Source: Thalia democratica (lineage: Eukaryota). Taken from it: a DNA stretch of 64,000 nt. The translations under genes and the position numbers were made by a program. The DNA lies in NCBI GenBank assembly GCA_965202585.1, contig OZ241829.1:26350001-26414000 (forward strand), written 5' to 3'. The notes beneath the pieces were generated by a model, which saw nothing but the letters and a program-made list of their open reading frames with translations, was not told where the DNA came from and searched no databases. Of this stretch, positions 7,513 through 17,797 are shown piece after piece; position 1 is the stretch's first letter; every line of letters begins with the position of its first letter.

Positions 7513-10500
7513 TTACCTGAATACAAGATCATAAATTTTTCAAGTTATTTTATTTGACACTAAAAAGTGTGTGTTCTAATCATACTAAAATAAAAGTTAT
7601 GTTTTTACACACAAAAACTAAACTTATTTAGTAGAGAACTTAGTATGAATAAAATTTTATGATCTGACATTTGTATGATCCTTTTTTTAATTTAGAAAAT
7701 AATTAATTTACCTGAATTCACTAATCATGTCTTCGTGAGCTTTAGTCACAATGTTTTCTCCAAAAACTTTTGCATTGAACTCTTCTTTAAACTTTTCTGT
7801 AATACAAATTTTTTGTTGCTGTAGTTGAAGGTTTAGCATTTATAATGTATAATAGAGGTGGTGAGAACAAAGCTTTTAAACATACAAGATCTTATTTTGT
7901 CAATCAAATTGATTTATAGTACGAAATAACTCTGATGAGTGGTGTTTGACGTTTCTTAAACTAGCTTAGTAAAGATCATATCTTTGGGTAAACAACATTT
8001 TAACAGATTGACTAAACAGAAAAAAAGTTAGACATCATGAATTAACTTTTAATAAAAGAATAAGATAACCTGTATGCTGTTGAGGAGATATAATCTTGTA
8101 GTCATAATTGAGCTTTAATTCATCCATCAAATGTTTATGTTTCTCTTCCATTTGTTCATACGTGATTTGGCTGTATTCGTAGTTTTTAAAAGACAGGCTT
8201 GAAGGTTCTGATTTTCCAGATGGATTGTAAATACCTGGGCAGTTAAATACTTAAAGCAAAAAGAAAAACTTTTTAGTTTTTTTTAAAATAAACTTTACTT
8301 CAAGCAACAGTTGAAAATAGTATACATTGTTAACATTTGTTTTTATAATTAGTTAAATCAACAGGCTAGTTTACGTCTTAAGTTTCGAAATTTTACTGCA
8401 CAGATTATAGAATAACCATTTGAGTGTAAAACATGTCTAACAAAATCATTCACAAAAAAATCAATCTGACCAAGTTTAAAGTACGGGACCCTGCCTTGCG
8501 CGTTGTTGCCCACCGGAAGCTTTTCATCGACGACTGTGACGTCATTAACTAGCAACCTGACCCACCCCAATGACGTCATAATACCAGGGTCCGTCTTGTT
8601 TTCGCCCAGCGCGTACTCTGACCACTTGATGCGCCACTCAATTTCGTTCCAACCGCCGACGTTCAGCTCCGTCATCGGGTGCTTCAGCAAGATTCGAGCC
8701 TTCATTGTTTTATTATGAAAATACTTAAACCGTGTGCTTTTTACTTTTGAGATTACGATAAAAAGTTTTCGACTTAAAAGTAACGAGAATAACATATATT
8801 AAGTGACAATAGTTTGATTAATTAGTATTTTTTTTTTTTAAAGAATTTATTTTATATCAACCGTGACTGTGTACAAGTTTAACATTAAAACAAAATCAAG
8901 ATTAAAAAACATAACAATATTTTTATATCTAGCAAAATTATATTTACTTATGCTATGCTTTTTACTTTTACAATAAAAAGTTCTCCAATTAAAAGTAACG
9001 AGAATATTATAACTTAAGTGACAATAGTTAGATTAATTAATAATTTGTTTATTAAAAAAAAAACTTTTTTTAATATCAACTGTAACTGTGTACAAGTTTA
9101 ACATTAAAAAAAAATTGAATAGTATCACAATATTTTTTTTCTAGCAAAATTATATTTACTAACTTTATTTAATAAGATTAAATAATTTGAGTGAAAACAG
9201 AAAAATGCAAAATTAAAATAGTAACTATCTAAGTAACTTTATTAGATTGCTGATGACACTTTTAATAAGCATAAAACATTTACTTAAGGTTTATATTTTA
9301 ATAAAATTTTTTGAAACTTTATAATGTTTTAGCCTAATTTTTTTTTTTTGATATTTTTCTTACACACAAAGCTTAAAAAAATAAACAATTTTCTGTAATA
9401 TGGAAAAAATAGACTGTTTACTTTTGTAAGCAGAAGCCTGAGATAAAACACAACACAAGTTAAAACAAACGGAACCATAAAATAAAATAATTATAAAACT
9501 AAGAAACTTTCAAATTAAAACTGACTGTTTTTGCAAACACTGGTAAATTTGTACAGATATGGATGGTGAGAACGTAAAAGCAACAACTTTATCGTGTCAC
9601 AAACACATCAAAAAAAAATTTCATTTTCATCACCTACTTTCCCAAGCTTAAGTATACAAAACTAATACTTGCGTAATACAAAACTGATAGAAAAGATATG
9701 AATAGTCTTTTTAGGCAAAACATACATTTGCAATTAAGTTTACTCGCAATTTTTCAAGAGTATGGCCTTCCGCTTAGGTACGCATTTTTAACACAGAGCT
9801 AAAAGTGCAAATCCAATAAATGCGTACCTAAGTGGCAGGTTATACACTTTTTATGCCTGCTTTCATTTTGAAATAACGCTAAGGTGCGTACCCAACCGGC
9901 AGTGCGTACCTTAGCAGCAGTACACTGTGCAAACACTTTGTACCTTCTTTCGTTTTGAAAACAGCGCAAAAGTGCGTTTTAAGCCGGCAGTGCGTATCTA
10001 ATAAATGCGTACCTAAGCGGCAAGTTACTGCAAAAATTTTAAACCTGCTTTCCCAAGCCGTCGCTCGTCTCGGGGCAGTGCCTCGCTTCCCCGACTTCTC
10101 CCCTCGCAGAAATGTGGCAGTCCCCGGTCGAGACAAAGTAGCTGGGATCCGATCTCGCCTTGACCACCAAGTGCCCGTTGTAAACGCTGAGAGAAAGAGG
10201 GGGGTATCCCCCTTTCTGATACCTCACCTTCATTTTAGGGTTGAGCCCCCGAAGCACTCCTGTGGAATGGAGATGTTTTTTTTTTGTTTCGTAACGTGTA
10301 AAGTATTTTTAATTTTTCCAAATGAGTTTTTTAATTTTTCAAAAGCGTTAGCTAGTTTGAAATGGTCATAAAATGGAAATAATTTTGTCCTGATGTGTAT
10401 TAAGATAAATATAAAAAAATTCAGAAAGTTAAAATCTTGTATTAGAATAATAAAAAGCTCTTATTAAACTGTATCCGTGGTGCACGACTCGATAACCGAA

Positions 10501-13500
10501 AGGTATTTTGCACACCAGGTCTTTGAACTAAAATTTTTGAAGGCTTGTTTTTTTGTCGTTCAATAAACAATTTAATTTAACTTATAAAGTTTACTTGTAT
10601 ATAAATAAAACAGCTTTTAAGAAATATGGTTTTTGCAAGTTGCTGATTTATAGTTTAATTTAATGTGTTATTAAAGTGCTTATCAAAATGAGTTTATAGG
10701 CTAAATAATATATAAAATCTTGTACAAACAATTGCAGCCATAAGCACCTTGTAATGTGTAGTTCTAACTAATTCAAGAACTTTTTTGCAAAAAAAAAAAC
10801 GGGTTTAATGTTTTAAAAAAAACTAACCGTCTTTGCACTGTCCGTTGCACAGCTCTTTTAGGAGTCGCAGACCGACTTTCAGAGGGAACCCGGATCCGGT
10901 GGCTCGGATCACCCGGGGATCGGGCGTGTTGTGGAACTGCGAGATGATTGCTTTTGACGTCACAGTGTTTAATTTTATCATGTACTTGTGCACGTGCACG
11001 TTTTCTATTGGCCGATTCGCCGCCGAGCACAGAACCTGATTGGTGCTCGGAAAGTAACCGTCTTTGCGGACTGCGGAGTTGTAAAACAATTTAATCGATT
11101 TTTACTCTTCGTAAAAAGTTTAATAAAATTGTAAAAATAATAAAGGATCTGTTATTTCAAATAAGCTGAAACTTATTAAATGTTTAGTAAAGCATTGAGA
11201 AGATTTTAGCTCTAGCTGAATTTTAAAACTAACGTTTTTTCATTTCTTTTTGGTGTGTAGAACTTTTATTTTTTGGTACAAAGCAGCTTGCAAGTTCAAG
11301 CCTGGATTTTTCACCTTTTTTGTTCAACTTGTATTTGAAACTAAAAACGTTATTAGATTTGATCAGGTAAGTTTTTTTTTTGGTTAAAAAAACAACAGTT
11401 TAAACAAGTAATTTTTAAAAGTATTACTTTGTCAAAAAAAATTGGAACAAAAATAAAATAAATTAAATCAGTTTAAAGTTTTTATGTTGGTTTATGTTGG
11501 TTGTTTCATTAGTATCATTTATTTAAACAGTAAGTATTTGAAGTCAATCAATTATTAGTTGAAATGGAATTGTTTTTATCCTAAAAAGAATATTTTAATT
11601 AGATATAAGTCGGAAATAATAAAAAAAAATTACGATTACAAAATGATAGAAATGGTTAAAAGGTTCAACAATTATATTTGAATGCAGCTTGTAAATAAAA
11701 GCATTAAATATGTAATTGAAACAGAGTAATCATTTCAAAGATATTGCTTATATATTACAAACATTTAGTTATAAAACTCAGAAACTTTTTTATAACTTCA
11801 TAACTGTCCAATTTCTTTAACAACTATTTTAATAAAACCATTCATAAATTATGAATTATCTCAGTGTTTTTAATATTTTTAGTTACTTTAGTAGTATATT
11901 TCACTGTTTTTCAAACTATATAAATTACACGTACTTTGTATATAAACTTTGTTGTATTTTAATATACTTAAAAAAAAAAAATGATTTCAAACATTTAAAC
12001 ATCTTTGAATGTTAAAGTTTTAAAAAAGCATTTCTTTAGTTTTAAAAACAGTTATATAACATTATGTATACTTGATAGCTTTGGTAGTCAGCTAAAAATT
12101 GAAGTAAAAGCATATTCTTAAAAACTGGATTATTAAAACTAAAATTTTTATAAAATGATATACAATTCTATCTATGTGGGAAATAAAATAAAGGTACTAT
12201 TAAAATCACATTAAGGGTGTTTTGAATTGTATAACAAACCTTTTAGAATTTTTAAAAATAGAATGTCCATACATTTTCAATTAAAAGTATCTTACTTGTA
12301 CTCATAGTCAAAATTGCCGTCTGAAATATTTTTTGTTTTTGTGATGAAAATTTTGCTTGACTTTTTAACATTTCTGGAAACCTGCACCCATTGGTTGTTT
12401 ACGACGTTATCTAAAACATTTTTAAACTAATTGACTTGTTTATAAGTTGTAGTTTAAGAAATTGTATTGTTAGTAAGTAAATTTTAAAAAGTTTTAATGC
12501 CTTATCAAGTAAAAAAGAATAGTACAGCTTTTAATATCCTAAAGTATACGATTTTACACTTAAAACACATTAAAACATTTAAAAAAATTCACCTAGTTGT
12601 TTCAAAACATTTGTTTTTGCTTTATTTCTAACTAATGAATCAAAATTTAAAGTATGAGGAGCACGAACTTTTTTCAACAAAGGTTTTCCCAAGATCAGAC
12701 TTTGGAAGGTTGCTGCATTGAAAACAAGTGTTGCTGTCCTCAAGCAATCCTTTGCAAGATTTATTTTTCGCACAAGCTGCTTCGGCTTGCCTCGTAGTGA
12801 CGTCATCTAATTGTAGTAACGTCAGTAATTTTTTTTGTAGTATTATTTTTTTGAAACGTATTTTTTATAACACAGCAACGACCACAAAAGAAAATGTAGC
12901 GACCAAATGAACAGTTTCAAATACTTAAAAATTCTAAGCGCAGATATATAAGACATTATCGTAAAAATATTCAGTGTTAAATTTTCAAATAAGTTTAAAA
13001 AAATTTAGATCCATTCCATTTTGTTGAGAGAATTATAATTATGATAACAGTATTTTAAAAGTTCGGTTGGATAGCATTATTTACTTAGCGACCAAATTTT
13101 CTTAATAAAACCTGCTACGTTAAACTATTTTATGCCACATTAAAGTTTCAATCAGCTTTAAATGTTATTTAAAAATTTTTAAACTATTTTGAAAATTTGG
13201 AAAGGTTTACTTAATGATCAAGAAAAAATTGGAGTTTGCATATTGTTTTAGATTTACAAAAAATAAAACACCTTTTGTCGTTGTACTAAATGGAAATGTA
13301 GTTGGAAATTTATTTGGTGTATTTGTTGTTGTAGAAACTGATGAAGTTGTTGTAGAAACTGAAATCGTTGTGGGCTTTGTAGTAGGAACTGTTGTTGTTG
13401 TTGTTGTTGTCGTTTTTGTTGTAGTTGTTGCAGTTTTTGTTGTTGTTGTTGTTGCAGTTTTCGTAGATTTTAAAGGAGGAATTTTTGTTATTGGAGTAGA

Positions 13501-15824
13501 AACTGTTGTTAAAGTAATTGTTGTAGGTGTTGTAAAGGGAGCTAGTTCTGTTGTTGTAGATGAATGTGCAGGAATTAAGTTTGTTGTAGTTTTTGTTGAA
13601 GAAGGAACTAATGTTTTTGTTGAAGGAGTTTGACTAGGATATGAAACTTTTGCTGTTGTCGGAATTATTATTGTGTTATCATCTAAACTTAGATAAGGTA
13701 GTCGTAAATATCCAAAGATAGCGAATCCCAAAAGAAAAACTACAACAGGTAAAATTGGGAAAATTATTTTAACTAAGCTAATGTATATTTTTTAAAAATG
13801 TATTTAAATTTAGTTTTAATTTTTTGTCACTATAAAAGTAAATAGAAGTAGCGTTATAAAATTGATTGAAACAACAAAACAAACTATATCATTTCTAAAA
13901 CTCTTATGTAGTAATAAAAATATGTCTTCACAATACATAAGTACCGTTAATTCAAATCGGTTTTTGCAAAGCAGTTTATTTTTTTTGCTTTTGTTTGAGG
14001 TCACATATAATATACAAATCTACTATTGTTAAAAAATTGTATAAATATTATTTTTTATCTAGGATAAGAGTATTTAGAAAATTTCTACACTCTAACTAAT
14101 AAGAAATAAACAACAAACTTATAGAACTTAATAAAGTTTTCTTCCATTTTTTTAATAAGTTTGATTTATGCTTTTTGAAAGATTTAAAACTCTGGATTAG
14201 TATATTAGGTTTGGTTTGAAAGCTTTCATCTATATTTTCTTTAGTTGCTGTTATTGAAAAATAATATTAATGATTTAATCAGTTAATTTAAAAAATTGCT
14301 TAACCTAGTATAAAGAGTTTTTTACAAAATGGTTGCAGTATGTTTTATTTATTACTAGTCTTAATATTAATAGTATTACTAATATTATTTCTAAAACTGG
14401 TAAACAATTTAATTTAAAAGGATTACATGACTACTCGGACAACACAAACTCTTAAAAAATGTTTGGTAGGCCATACCTCTAAAAGTATAAAATATTTTTC
14501 AATGTTTAAAAAAAATCGTTTGTAGATCTTATTAAAATTATGATGTTAAAAAATTAACTAAAATTGAACCTATTAAAAGATAAATTTCAAATTTACTAAA
14601 AGTATGTATATTTTTAAACTCATTTTAGCTACATCTCTAAAAATTTTTAAAACTTTGCAAAAAAATTGGTGAGTAGGTATTAAATATACCTACATACGTA
14701 CTTTTTATTCTTTAAAATAAATATAATTTTATAACTTGTGGCCGTTTATGAAAAATTTCAAGAACTTGAATTATCGTATTTGAAATGTCAGAATTTAAAT
14801 CGTGCACCCCTTTAAAAGTTATCCTATTTATTATCATACTTGCTAATTCAAGTTAAACTATGTAGAAAATTTATGACCGTTTATTTGTTTTTATGTTTAT
14901 AAACTTAACAACTAATTAGAATGAATTATTTCTTTATTCAGTATGGCTTGAAATTAACAACTAATTAGAATGTATTATTTCTTTATTCAGTATGGCTTAT
15001 AATTTAAATCATTGTAAAAAACTTTGTTGTTTTTTAATTTATGTTTAAAAACTCGACGTACATTCGTAATAGTAAAAACTAATAGATTGTATTTTATCTT
15101 CAACAATATACTTAAATAAATTTGTCACATATGTACTAAAAAGTGGAATGTTTAAATCAATATTCTCAGTTTAAGTATCTGTTAATTATGACAGTAAATT
15201 TATCTGAAGTTCAAAACAATTTAGGTGTGACGTCATTATTACTGCGTATATTAATTCTAAAAATCTTACTCCTTAACACTTATACAATTTTTTTGTATTC
15301 GTAGTCGTTCTTAACACTTATACAACTTTTTAGGACTATCAGCAAGCAGTTTTGGATTGAAAAGCTTGACTGCTATAGCTTTTTTTACTGTGAATTCATA
15401 TTTACTTCATTGATCGACTTACGATTTAGCAGTAAGGCAAAGAAAATTATAAATCAAGAAAGTATATTTTGGTTTATATTTGTCCGTTTTAATCACTCCA
15501 TAATTTTCATACTGTTTGGGATATCATAAAGTTATAAATTAAATTTTAGACAAGTTTAAAGCTAAGTTTCTAAGCGTTAAAAAAAGTCATTTTAGTATAG
15601 TTTGGGGTGGTACAACTGAAGCAAGGCCCTGCTTGAAACTTTTTGTAGTTTTTTTTTCTTTTTCTTTTTTCAAGGTGGAGCAACTGCTCTAACGTTCTAC
15701 CTCACGCGTCGACCCTGGTATAAAGTAAAATTAATATATTTTTATTACACTTACATTGATTTTCTTCAACCATAAACGAGCTGCTGTTGTAAGCTTCTTT
15801 TGTATTGTAGAAGCTTGTGTCCAT
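7513..15824 (-). CDS. Membrane-anchored heparin lyase I-like (PL13-like) polysaccharide lyase with mucin stalk, 12 coding exons, ~660-670 aa
   Basis: Phase-consistent GT-AG exons: 15824-15755 (MDTSFYNTKEAY...), 14229-14119, 13772-13272 (TM IIFPILPVVVFLLGFAIFGYL + Thr-rich stalk), 12806-12669 (Cys-rich), 12410-12296 (VVNNQWVQV), 11340-11234 (KSRLELASCF), 11070-10828 (AIISQFHNTPD), 10259-10045 (QKGGYPPLSLSVYNGHLVVKARSD), 8723 or 8699-8471 (WNEIEWRIKWSEY...VGNNAQGRVPYFKL), 8234-8070 (GIYNPSG...), 7796-7712, 7516-7513 (stop). The first two exons and the terminal exon are the least certain. Confidence 0.85.
8774..9164. repeat. Intronic tandem duplication, ~213-bp unit x2
   Basis: ttaaaagtaacgagaat at 8774 and 8989; ctagcaaaattatatttact at ~8929 and ~9141. 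Confidence 0.85.
13272..13700 (-). repeat. Low-complexity Thr/Ser/Pro-rich (ACA/ACT-rich) mucin-like coding tract
   Basis: ORF-track 13207-13731: TTTTTKTATTTTKTTTTTTTTVPTTKPTT. The antisense Val-rich ORF 13214-13633 is its shadow. Confidence 0.9.
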
Positions 15825-17797
15825 TTCTTAGAGAGTAAATTCAAATATACTTATATGTTATAAAAAGCAAATTGTTGAATATTGTTGAACAAAAGCAGAA
15901 AGCAAATACATATTTTTTTTCCTCATTAATAACTATACGTACATAAACTTCAAAGCTAGAATACTAATGAAAACTTTTCTTTACAAAAAAGACTTTTAAA
16001 AATTCTGATTTTTTTTTATATTAGATGCAATGTTGCTAGGAGACATTTGTTTAAAGTTGATTTTAATATTCATATTATTATATCAATTCATTTTGTTTAA
16101 CTTATTCACCTTCTTAATAGTTAATTAATTTTAATTAGTATAGTTAACTAACTATTATTAAACAACTTTCAATATTTATTATTTAAAAGACGTACTTTTT
16201 AGATTTAAAAAATTTCTTCACATGTTTTTAAATGCTTTAATTATATGATAAAATTTAGTTCAAGTTTAATTGAAGTTACGTGTTTTGTATTAGTTGGGTA
16301 ATATGGTATACAACTTTTTAACAGTAAAGTGATTATTGTATTATAAGTTTTCTATTTGTCGTAAACTCTCAAGTTAATTAAAAATTTATATTTTTTTTGT
16401 AGTAATGTATTGACGGAAAGAAAATTATAGATACCAAAATACTAAATTAAAAATATACTTTTCTTCAGAGTTAGCTGACTTTAAAAATATATAGTTATAT
16501 CAGTAAAAAGTTATACAATTATTATAACTTTTGTTTTTGATGAGACACTCAAAAAATAAGAATCAATTTTTTAAAATGAAAGTTTAAAAATATTTTTTCG
16601 GACAAAAGTTCAGTCTTTTATTTTAAAAATAGATCTTTTCAAATAACTAAACTTTTTAACCTTTTTTTTGTCTTTCTAGGCTAGCACTTAATAATTTTTT
16701 ACTTGCACTGAACTAAAATAAATAGAAAATACTACAGAGTTTATCGAAAAGATTATTTATATCAAATATTTGATTGAAATTATTTTTAACTAATTTGAGA
16801 ATAAGACAATTTCACAAAATTTTATTATGATAAGAAAAGTTAATTTTGGATAAAAACTGCAAGTTTTTTTTATACAACTATTCAACATTATATACGAAAG
16901 TGCTTACATTTCATATAAAAAAGATTCTTTTTTGACTCTGAAATACTCGTAAAACGTAGATGCTTTTGAATTATACGCTTAGTATAACATACTCAGTCTT
17001 TTAATGCTTTTTTAGAGCTACTTAAGATACCTAATCTTTTAAATCTTCTTGACATGCGTAGTCTTCTTTTTATATTGTAGTGCTTTAAAGCTTAACTGGA
17101 TTCAACTAATTTATTTTAAATAGTTGAATTTTTACTGATCTATATACTAGTTTAAAAGTTGAGCTTTGTTTATACCAATTTATTAAGCGATAACATTCAT
17201 TTTGAAAAATTTGTCAGTTATTGTTGTTCAAAATGTACATAAGTGTTTAAAAGATTAATTATTTGTAATTCACTAACTAACCTTTTTTAAGACAACTTTA
17301 TACTTATTTTTAATTTTGTATACAACAAATTGGGTACTCTTTATTTTATTAGATAAGATCTCAAAAGTTAAGTGAATAATTCAAGGTTTATTATGAAGAT
17401 AAAAAACCATTTAAGTTATGCTTGTCAATGCTAAGCTATTAGTTTTAATATTTTTACTCGTTAACCATAAAAATGCAACGATGTCATAAGTAGTAGTTTA
17501 AACTTTTTAATTTTCTTCGTCTCGAGTGTTAAGCAACGTTTTGCAAAAAAGAATTGAATAGATTATTTTCTTACAATGATTACAAATGCAAGTTGATAAA
17601 ATGAAAATATAATTTAGACTTAGACTGAAAACTAAGACTCATTAAATATTACTTTTTAATTTACTATTATAAGAAAAAAATCACTACGTTCAAATATAAA
17701 ACCAATGCAAAACAAGATTGATTATTTGTAAATCTTTGTTAAAGACAAAAAAGTTTTTGTAACGTTTTTGTAGCGCTGATCTTCTTGACAAAGTTAC

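Follow-up and report, generated by a model that had tools for sequence, protein, structure and literature searches.

A heparinase I-type lyase gene in the tunicate Thalia democratica, predicted to encode a membrane-anchored enzyme on a mucin-like stalk

Can a polysaccharide lyase of the bacterial heparinase I type serve as the outer domain of a chordate membrane protein? The question is raised by a gene in a 64,000-nt stretch of the genome of the tunicate Thalia democratica (GenBank assembly GCA_965202585.1, contig OZ241829.1, here C5; C5:26350001-26414000, referred to below as the window; genome of 801 Mb, ∼25% GC). The gene was read on the minus strand, with splice borders set by script. It spans ∼8.1 kb, and its 10–11 exons form one open frame of 642–660 amino acids (aa). 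Its exon joins are seen in RNA, its plan recurs in diverged paralogs (loci D and par2), and its lyase domain resembles bacterial heparinase I over the full length of that protein. With a probability of roughly 60%, the product would be a single-pass type II membrane glycoprotein of ∼650 aa, displayed on the cell surface or shed, that cuts a sulfated, uronic-acid-containing glycan outside the cell; its topology, glycosylation, localization, activity and substrate are predicted from the features described below. The parts of the gene, in window coordinates, are as follows.

15755..15824, minus strand: exon 1, start codon and residues 1-23 of the tail (70 nt, phase 1 end, GTAAGT donor)
14119..14247, minus strand: exon 2, rest of the tail, with KPNI-x-x-Q-[ST]-F, the KKWKK cluster and the first helix residues (seen in RNA, conserved in D and par2)
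13739 (or 13772)..13272, minus strand: exon 3, helix and stalk (acceptor 13739 in RNA of two runs)
13705..13739, minus strand: start of exon 3, main part of the putative signal-anchor helix, which with 14119-14137 makes up residues 61-78 (RNA, hydropathy maximum)
13273..13680, minus strand: stalk, residues 87-222 (by composition; the 3′ end of exon 3 is joined to exon 4 in RNA)
12669..12806, minus strand: exon 4, 4-Cys module followed by NLPKS..G..FVEK (exact RNA joints on both sides)
12296..12410, minus strand: exon 5, the first exon similar to the mature N-terminus of bacterial heparinase I (RNA joints; NVVNNQWV.. against QIIDGCWV.. in hhalign)
11234..11340, minus strand: exon 6, long form of 107 nt, with KSRLEL, counterpart of the bacterial KGRAEF (RNA, hhalign)
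10828..11070, minus strand: exon 7, with SQFHNTPDP, counterpart of the bacterial QWH..PD catalytic/Ca motif (RNA, alignment)
10045..10259, minus strand: exon 8, with GGYPPL, shared with bacterial heparinase I (RNA, alignments)
8471..8699, minus strand: exon 9, C-terminal sheet of the lyase domain (Pfam PF14099; a loose RNA end after exon 8 reads into it)
8070..8249, minus strand: exon 10, GIY (putative catalytic Tyr) and a conserved C-terminal extension (alignment, paralogs)
7708..7796, minus strand: putative exon 11, last 29 residues and stop (in phase with the donor at 8070; likeness to paralog D)

A reading of this DNA made from its letters alone (the sequence-only reading) had placed the exons for a tail, a helix, a stalk and a Cys module in the same transcript as the lyase. 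RNA contigs from two runs (X1 and X2) of one marine metatranscriptome sample, which cover roughly as much of the 7.9-kb stretch as is exonic, were aligned to positions 9960-15900 of the window. Two contigs from different runs (479 and 163 nt; X1 record 2 and X2 record 7) joined exon 2 (14247-14119, exact) to position 13739. A 1736-nt contig (X1 record 1) covered 13378-13272, 12806-12669, 12410-12296, 11070-10827 and 10258-10044, and its loose end corresponded to the start of exon 9. The 107 nt left unlisted in a gap of its alignment matched exon 6 (11340-11234), and a contig of the other run (X2 record 5) lay on 11234-11340, between exons 5 and 7. Every contig border inside the gene coincided with a predicted GT/AG site; the contigs therefore represent processed RNAs, not DNA. 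Codons of the stalk and the lyase were found on one RNA molecule and those of the tail, helix and stalk on another, the two meeting within the open exon 3. Stalk and lyase share one mRNA. The common transcript proposed in the sequence-only reading is borne out by spliced RNA from exon 2 to exon 3, and from exon 3 through exons 4-8 into exon 9.

The gene model could in principle have fused two genes, the tail, helix and stalk exons belonging to a separate upstream gene and the lyase having its own start. The missing RNA joint of exon 1 and an unspliced RNA contig running over its donor would fit such an artefact. Stalk and lyase codons nevertheless occur in one spliced contig, and tail and helix codons in another that overlaps it within the open exon 3; the same exon order is found at two diverged loci; and neither a Met nor a signal peptide is present where the lyase begins (exons 4-5). 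A separate transmembrane/mucin gene, or a lyase with its own start, had been named in advance as fatal to the sequence-only reading, and the RNA shows the exon 3 stalk spliced onto the lyase exons instead. The artefact is very improbable and close to refuted. Exon 1 has a phase 1 end, and exons 2-4 are all of the phase 1-1 type. The stop-free stretch around exon 3 extends over 194 codons in DNA of ∼27% GC, for which an estimate based on ∼0.09 stops per codon gives a probability of ∼2e-8 per start position; chance is therefore not a plausible source.

The same plan was found elsewhere in the genome. Exon 7 had 13 matches, among them some at C5:29.68-29.78 Mb (∼41% identity), and eight loci were compared. 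Paralogs D (∼53.73 Mb) and par2 (∼53.75 Mb), both on a different chromosome (contig C4), are ∼60% identical to the gene in the lyase. Each has a first exon of 70 nt with an MD.. start, the same ATG context, a phase 1 end and a GTAAGT donor. This is followed by a tail exon with KPNI..Q.F, ..GWK and a basic cluster, a helix of 24-25 residues leading into LPNISL.DNT, a short Thr/Pro stalk, a 4-Cys exon and all the lyase exons. Since D and par2 share this plan and have short stalks, they support exon 1 and indicate that the architecture is older than the long stalk. In the window gene, exon 1 starts in the context aagaaATGG, 6 nt downstream of an in-frame TAA, and encodes MDTSFYNT...; what argues for this exon with its ATG is its conservation in the paralogs. 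Exon 4 is conserved in D, par2 and a further paralog, F, and partly in paralog E; neither similarity nor a hydropathy scan revealed the N-terminal exons of E, F and paralog G. D, par2 and E are tandem neighbours on one strand, all within ∼35 kb (C4:53723278-53772500), E being the most diverged of the three.

The ratio of non-synonymous to synonymous substitution rates (dN/dS), calculated against D and par2, came to 0.41-0.49 over exons 1-4 (∼0.25 when exon 4 is taken by itself) and to 0.12-0.13 over the lyase exons, the values for short exons resting on small counts. G+C content at third codon positions (GC3) was 0.59-0.86 in paralog E and 0.29-0.44 in D and par2. The latter two are AT-rich throughout, and dS between the copies is therefore saturated.

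The N-terminal tail of ∼60 polar and basic residues ending in KKWKKTLLSS, as described in the sequence-only reading, is present in exons 1 and 2, exon 2 ending ...KKWKKTLLSSI. The single hydrophobic helix reported to follow it is also there, in a shorter form: the 11 residues KIIFPILPVVV are intronic in RNA, which uses the acceptor at 13739 and not the one at 13772. A 23-residue helix was accordingly rejected as the expressed form. In its expressed form the helix has 18 residues, TLLSSIIFLLGFAIFGYL, flanked by KK and R. The acceptor at 13739 has a good pyrimidine tract, and the AG at 13772 is weaker; the in-frame form longer by 33 nt that the latter would produce is a possible one, and none was seen in the RNA. 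In the spliced model, hydropathy (Kyte-Doolittle, 19-residue mean) peaked at 2.02 at residues 62-80, the next highest value being 1.23, within the lyase. The 15 residues before the helix contain seven Lys/Arg and no Asp/Glu, and the 15 after it contain one basic and two acidic residues. The N-terminus is acidic and, like the first 60 residues as a whole, polar, which leaves no signal peptide. All 11 Cys and all four N-x-S/T sequons are C-terminal to the helix, which fits a domain in the lumen or outside the cell. The protein has no cleavable signal peptide, a single hydrophobic segment of at least 17 residues after the tail and a positive-inside charge bias. These features strongly indicate a signal anchor with the N-terminus inside and the C-terminus outside (type II topology), as predicted from the protein sequence; hydropathy and charge bias of the spliced protein both fit the single anchor that had been proposed.

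Between helix and Cys module, the predicted Thr/Ser/Pro stalk of ∼140 aa was measured at 136 aa (residues 87-222). It consists of 43% Thr, 11% Ser and 11% Pro (65% together) and includes a run of ACA/ACT triplets at 13390-13454. Its length varies about tenfold among the paralogs (136 aa here versus ∼12 in D and ∼25 in par2), and a copy 81 kb away has 12 additional nt (4 Thr). A long Thr/Ser/Pro stretch whose length differs between copies is what is expected of a mucin-like stalk. Exon 4 had been described as a module of four to five Cys, loosely PAN/apple-like. It has four, not five, with the spacing C-x5-C-x9-C-x2-C. PAN/apple domains usually have a three-disulfide pattern over ∼80 aa. With four Cys confined to 20 residues, and no Pfam family matching exon 4 at E ≤ 10, the PAN/apple identity was dropped.

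The sequence-only reading had also held that host exons were grafted onto the lyase. Exon 5 is the first exon with similarity to the bacterial protein; what precedes it, exons 1-3 and most of exon 4, has no bacterial counterpart and is thus an addition. In the alignment, the Cys-bearing part of exon 4 lies across from the signal peptide of the bacterial protein. To this extent the claim stands. As regards an origin in host genes, the exon 4 peptide occurs at eight loci in this genome, all beside lyase exons, and the exon 2 peptide at lyase loci only, so that no donor gene is visible.

The same protein with the same topology might instead be retained in the Golgi or secretory pathway, trimming nascent glycosaminoglycan chains before their export. 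The observed anchor is short (18 residues), a basic cluster adjoins the membrane, and the order of tail, anchor, stem and catalytic domain is that of Golgi enzymes. However, a 60-aa tail and a 136-aa mucin stalk are long for Golgi residents, the helices of D and par2 have 24-25 residues, and a tenfold variation in stalk length fits reach from a surface better than it fits a Golgi stem. Retention in the Golgi is unlikely on this evidence, and display at the surface, or shedding from it, is the preferred reading.

Single exons are too short for sequence searches, and the lyase was therefore compared offline with four Bacteroides heparinase I genes. Six members of the tunicate family were aligned in hhalign with the four bacterial proteins, each of which scores above the PF14099 cut-off. 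The probability was 97.4% (E 1.5e-11), and the 336 aligned columns ran from bacterial residue 5 to residue 391 (5-391), the full length. The alignment paired QFH with QWH (SQFHNTPD with AQWHGMPD), KSRLEL with KGRAEF, GGYPPL with GGYPPL and GIY with GIY. Pairwise blastp against bacterial heparinase I gave 27% identity over 166 aa. In Pfam searches with single exons, exon 9 alone matched, to PF14099 (Polysacc_lyase), with E-values of 1.4e-5 (25.5 bits) and 9.8e-5, below the gathering cut-off of 29.9. By whole-domain similarity, the domain is assigned to the PL13/heparinase I family. GH88 (PF07470), the bacterial-type follow-up enzyme, had no match in the genome in an exon-by-exon search, which is weak evidence only.

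SQFHNTPDP is invariant in eight sequences, and six diverged paralogs all have the same Gln-x-His, Tyr, KSRLEL Lys/Arg and GGYPPL. The bacterial counterparts Gln149, His151 and Tyr357 are presumably the catalytic residues of the B. thetaiotaomicron enzyme. The Ca2+ site of Ph-HepI is formed by Glu228, Trp254, Asn351, Asp352 and position 169 (PMC6688311). When these positions were placed tentatively by motif alignment, the Asp after Q-x-H and one Asn were kept, and Trp was replaced by Tyr.

The domain could also be one that does not cut, in which case an inactive lyase fold would serve a membrane-bound receptor or lectin for the binding of sulfated glycans. Changes at putative Ca2+ ligand positions and the insertion of 4-5 residues before the GIY Tyr would be in keeping with this, and the conserved tail motif could serve in signalling or sorting. 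Loss of catalysis is harder to reconcile with the Gln-x-His, the Tyr, the KSRLEL Lys/Arg and GGYPPL being unchanged in six diverged paralogs, or with a dN/dS of 0.12, though constraint alone does not tell binding from catalysis. A purely binding role is quite unlikely, and an active lyase remains the favoured reading.

Further copies of the gene were found on C5. One lies ∼81 kb beyond it (C5:26437001-26455000) and is 99.2% identical over 8.8 kb. Its frame is intact (646 aa), its stalk is longer by 4 Thr, and five amino acids differ. Either a tandem duplication of very recent date or the other haplotype, assembled as a duplicate, could account for it. Of the four variants of its exon 8, three occur in one RNA contig, so the copy, or an allele like it, is also expressed. 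Three further near copies are 87-97% identical at the exon level (C5:26301897-26318000, C5:17923116-17939500 and C5:17956500-17972672). Stop codons interrupt their frames in the exons for the tail, helix, stalk or Cys module. Two of the three break off after exon 7, and exon 9 of one is frameshifted; all three look like pseudogenes of the anchored lyase.

At the 3′ end of the gene, a GT is found at the same place in all paralogs, after ..H-T/S (8070 here, after ..QQHT). If this donor is left unused, the frame continues to a stop at 8035-8037. The putative exon 11 is 59% identical over 27 aa (7809-7729) to a block ∼350 nt downstream of exon 10 in paralog D. Judged by the conserved GT and this likeness, the gene likely ends with exon 11 (7796..7708), giving 660 aa, rather than by read-through to the 8035 stop. 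The hydrophobic end of the simpler model, YLILLLKVNS, would then represent read-through into an intron.

In the core lyase exons 7-9, GC3 was 0.67-0.72; for exons 2-6 and 10 the values were 0.08-0.45. This may reflect a foreign composition in decay, local conversion or a bias linked to expression. A division into a GC-rich bacterial domain and AT-rich host exons was considered and discarded, given that lyase exons 5, 6 and 10 are AT-rich and that D and par2 are AT-rich throughout.

The protein would work as follows. The unprocessed N-terminal tail of ∼60 aa would stay in the cytosol, the 18-residue signal anchor inserting with its basic KKWKK side inward, and the rest of the protein would enter the secretory lumen. 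The 136-residue stalk, probably O-glycosylated in the Golgi, would be stiff and roughly 25-35 nm long. It would carry a small disulfide-bonded cap (exon 4) and the heparinase I-type (PL13-like) beta-elimination lyase domain. Displayed on the cell surface or shed, the enzyme would cut a sulfated, uronic-acid-containing polysaccharide outside the cell by elimination.

Several observations weigh against this account. An 18-residue helix is nearer to Golgi or endoplasmic reticulum anchors than to plasma-membrane anchors. Searches of solved structures with exon 7 alone, and with profiles of exons 7 and 9, gave chance matches only. Two positions tentatively mapped as Ca2+ ligands differ, Glu being replaced by Gln before GGYPP and Asp by Ala in GNNA, and the 4-5 residue insertion stands just before the GIY Tyr in this gene, D and par2, while E, F and G are without it. 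The middle of the stalk (13379-13465, 87 nt) was masked as a repeat in the RNA alignment, and continuity there comes from the open frame and from the lengths of the overlapping contigs, which hold 39 and 73 further letters in the masked part, enough for an overlap. No joint between exons 1 and 2 was found in the RNA contigs of X1 and X2; the contig with exon 2 has only 3 letters upstream, and its alignment ends exactly at the exon 2 acceptor. Finally, a 260-nt RNA contig (window 15709-15968) spans exon 1 and continues for 46 nt into intron 1 without splicing; it may come from pre-mRNA, from a different transcript or from carried-over DNA.

Heparin-like glycans have been reported from tunicates, and an enzyme acting on the animal's own chains is therefore conceivable. 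That the protein, whether in the Golgi or at the cell surface, is a membrane-tethered beta-eliminase of heparin- or heparan-sulfate-like chains made by the chordate itself is a doubtful proposition, and the idea in the sequence-only reading that it edits the animal's own proteoglycans is speculation.

Relatives outside this genome were few. A phmmer search with exon 7 against 1.84 billion protein representatives returned two short marine-metagenome fragments, 72% and 53% identical, and no full-length or ascidian protein; a filamin-like match was spurious. Both fragments are exon-7-like open frames on ENA contigs of ∼1 kb. Their occurrence in marine metagenomes points to relatives of this lyase subfamily in other planktonic organisms. 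Searches of metagenome contigs with exon 7 and of bacterial genomes with exon 9 found nothing. The literature searched contained no report of a PL13 gene in an animal, nor of one with a membrane anchor. The gene combines a known lyase family with a known membrane plan, and this combination is not described in the literature searched.

Two other features of the window were noted. In intron 7 (10358-10556), contig depth in two runs of unrecorded library type (X3 and X5) jumped ∼300-fold, to >110,000 against 300-1,000 in the vicinity, and loose ends were numerous, which suggests a short repeat present in very many copies. At positions 86-599, on the minus strand, open frames with reverse-transcriptase-like motifs (..AVLLDLSKAFDSV.., ..GVPQSSVLGPLLF..) are probably, from reading of the letters, a fragment of a non-LTR (long terminal repeat) retrotransposon.

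Heparinase I-type polysaccharide lyases are known as soluble bacterial enzymes. Typical of the family are a beta-jelly-roll fold with a thumb and the cleavage of heparin by beta-elimination. Like bacterial heparinase I (BT4675 of Bacteroides thetaiotaomicron, HepI of Pedobacter heparinus), the tunicate protein has Q-x-H..PD, K-x-R-x-E, GGYPPL and GIY in a domain of ∼370 aa. Unlike it, the tunicate coding region is split by 9-10 spliceosomal introns, and the protein has a shorter loop after Q-x-H and an extra conserved C-terminal tail; identity is only ∼23%. Bacterial heparinase I is a soluble endolyase that acts in the periplasm on heavily sulfated heparin and is made with a signal peptide (PMC9067506). 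In the tunicate protein, a tail, a predicted anchor, a stalk and a Cys cap stand in the place of that signal peptide.

The gene presents a foreign catalytic domain fitted with eukaryotic targeting parts, namely a predicted signal anchor, a mucin-like stalk, a putative disulfide cap and phase 1-1 exons, and it is transcribed. If the enzyme is active, it raises the question of whether a chordate cuts sulfated uronic-acid glycans, its own or foreign, by elimination. The stalk lengths of the paralogs offer a natural series for the effect of tether length on a surface enzyme; stalks of 12, 25 and 136 residues would, if the enzyme does cut the animal's own chains, set the distance from the membrane at which the cut is made.

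Among type II membrane enzymes, the brush-border ectoenzymes sucrase-isomaltase and enteropeptidase have an O-glycosylated Ser/Thr stalk. The protein predicted here shares with them a cytoplasmic tail, an uncleaved signal anchor, a Ser/Thr-rich stalk and an outside catalytic domain, but their catalytic domains are unrelated, being hydrolases or proteases and not a lyase. Its membrane plan is also like that of the type II enzymes of glycosaminoglycan synthesis in the Golgi (NDST and the heparan sulfate sulfotransferases). In its possible role, the cutting or editing of heparan-sulfate-like chains after their synthesis, it would resemble the extracellular editors heparanase (GH79) and Sulf. These animal enzymes build, sulfate or hydrolyse such chains, and none is known to be a beta-eliminase. 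If the tunicate enzyme does cut the animal's own chains by elimination, it would leave unsaturated uronate ends in animal tissue, and elimination would be a third way of editing such chains in animals, beside hydrolysis by heparanase and desulfation by Sulf.

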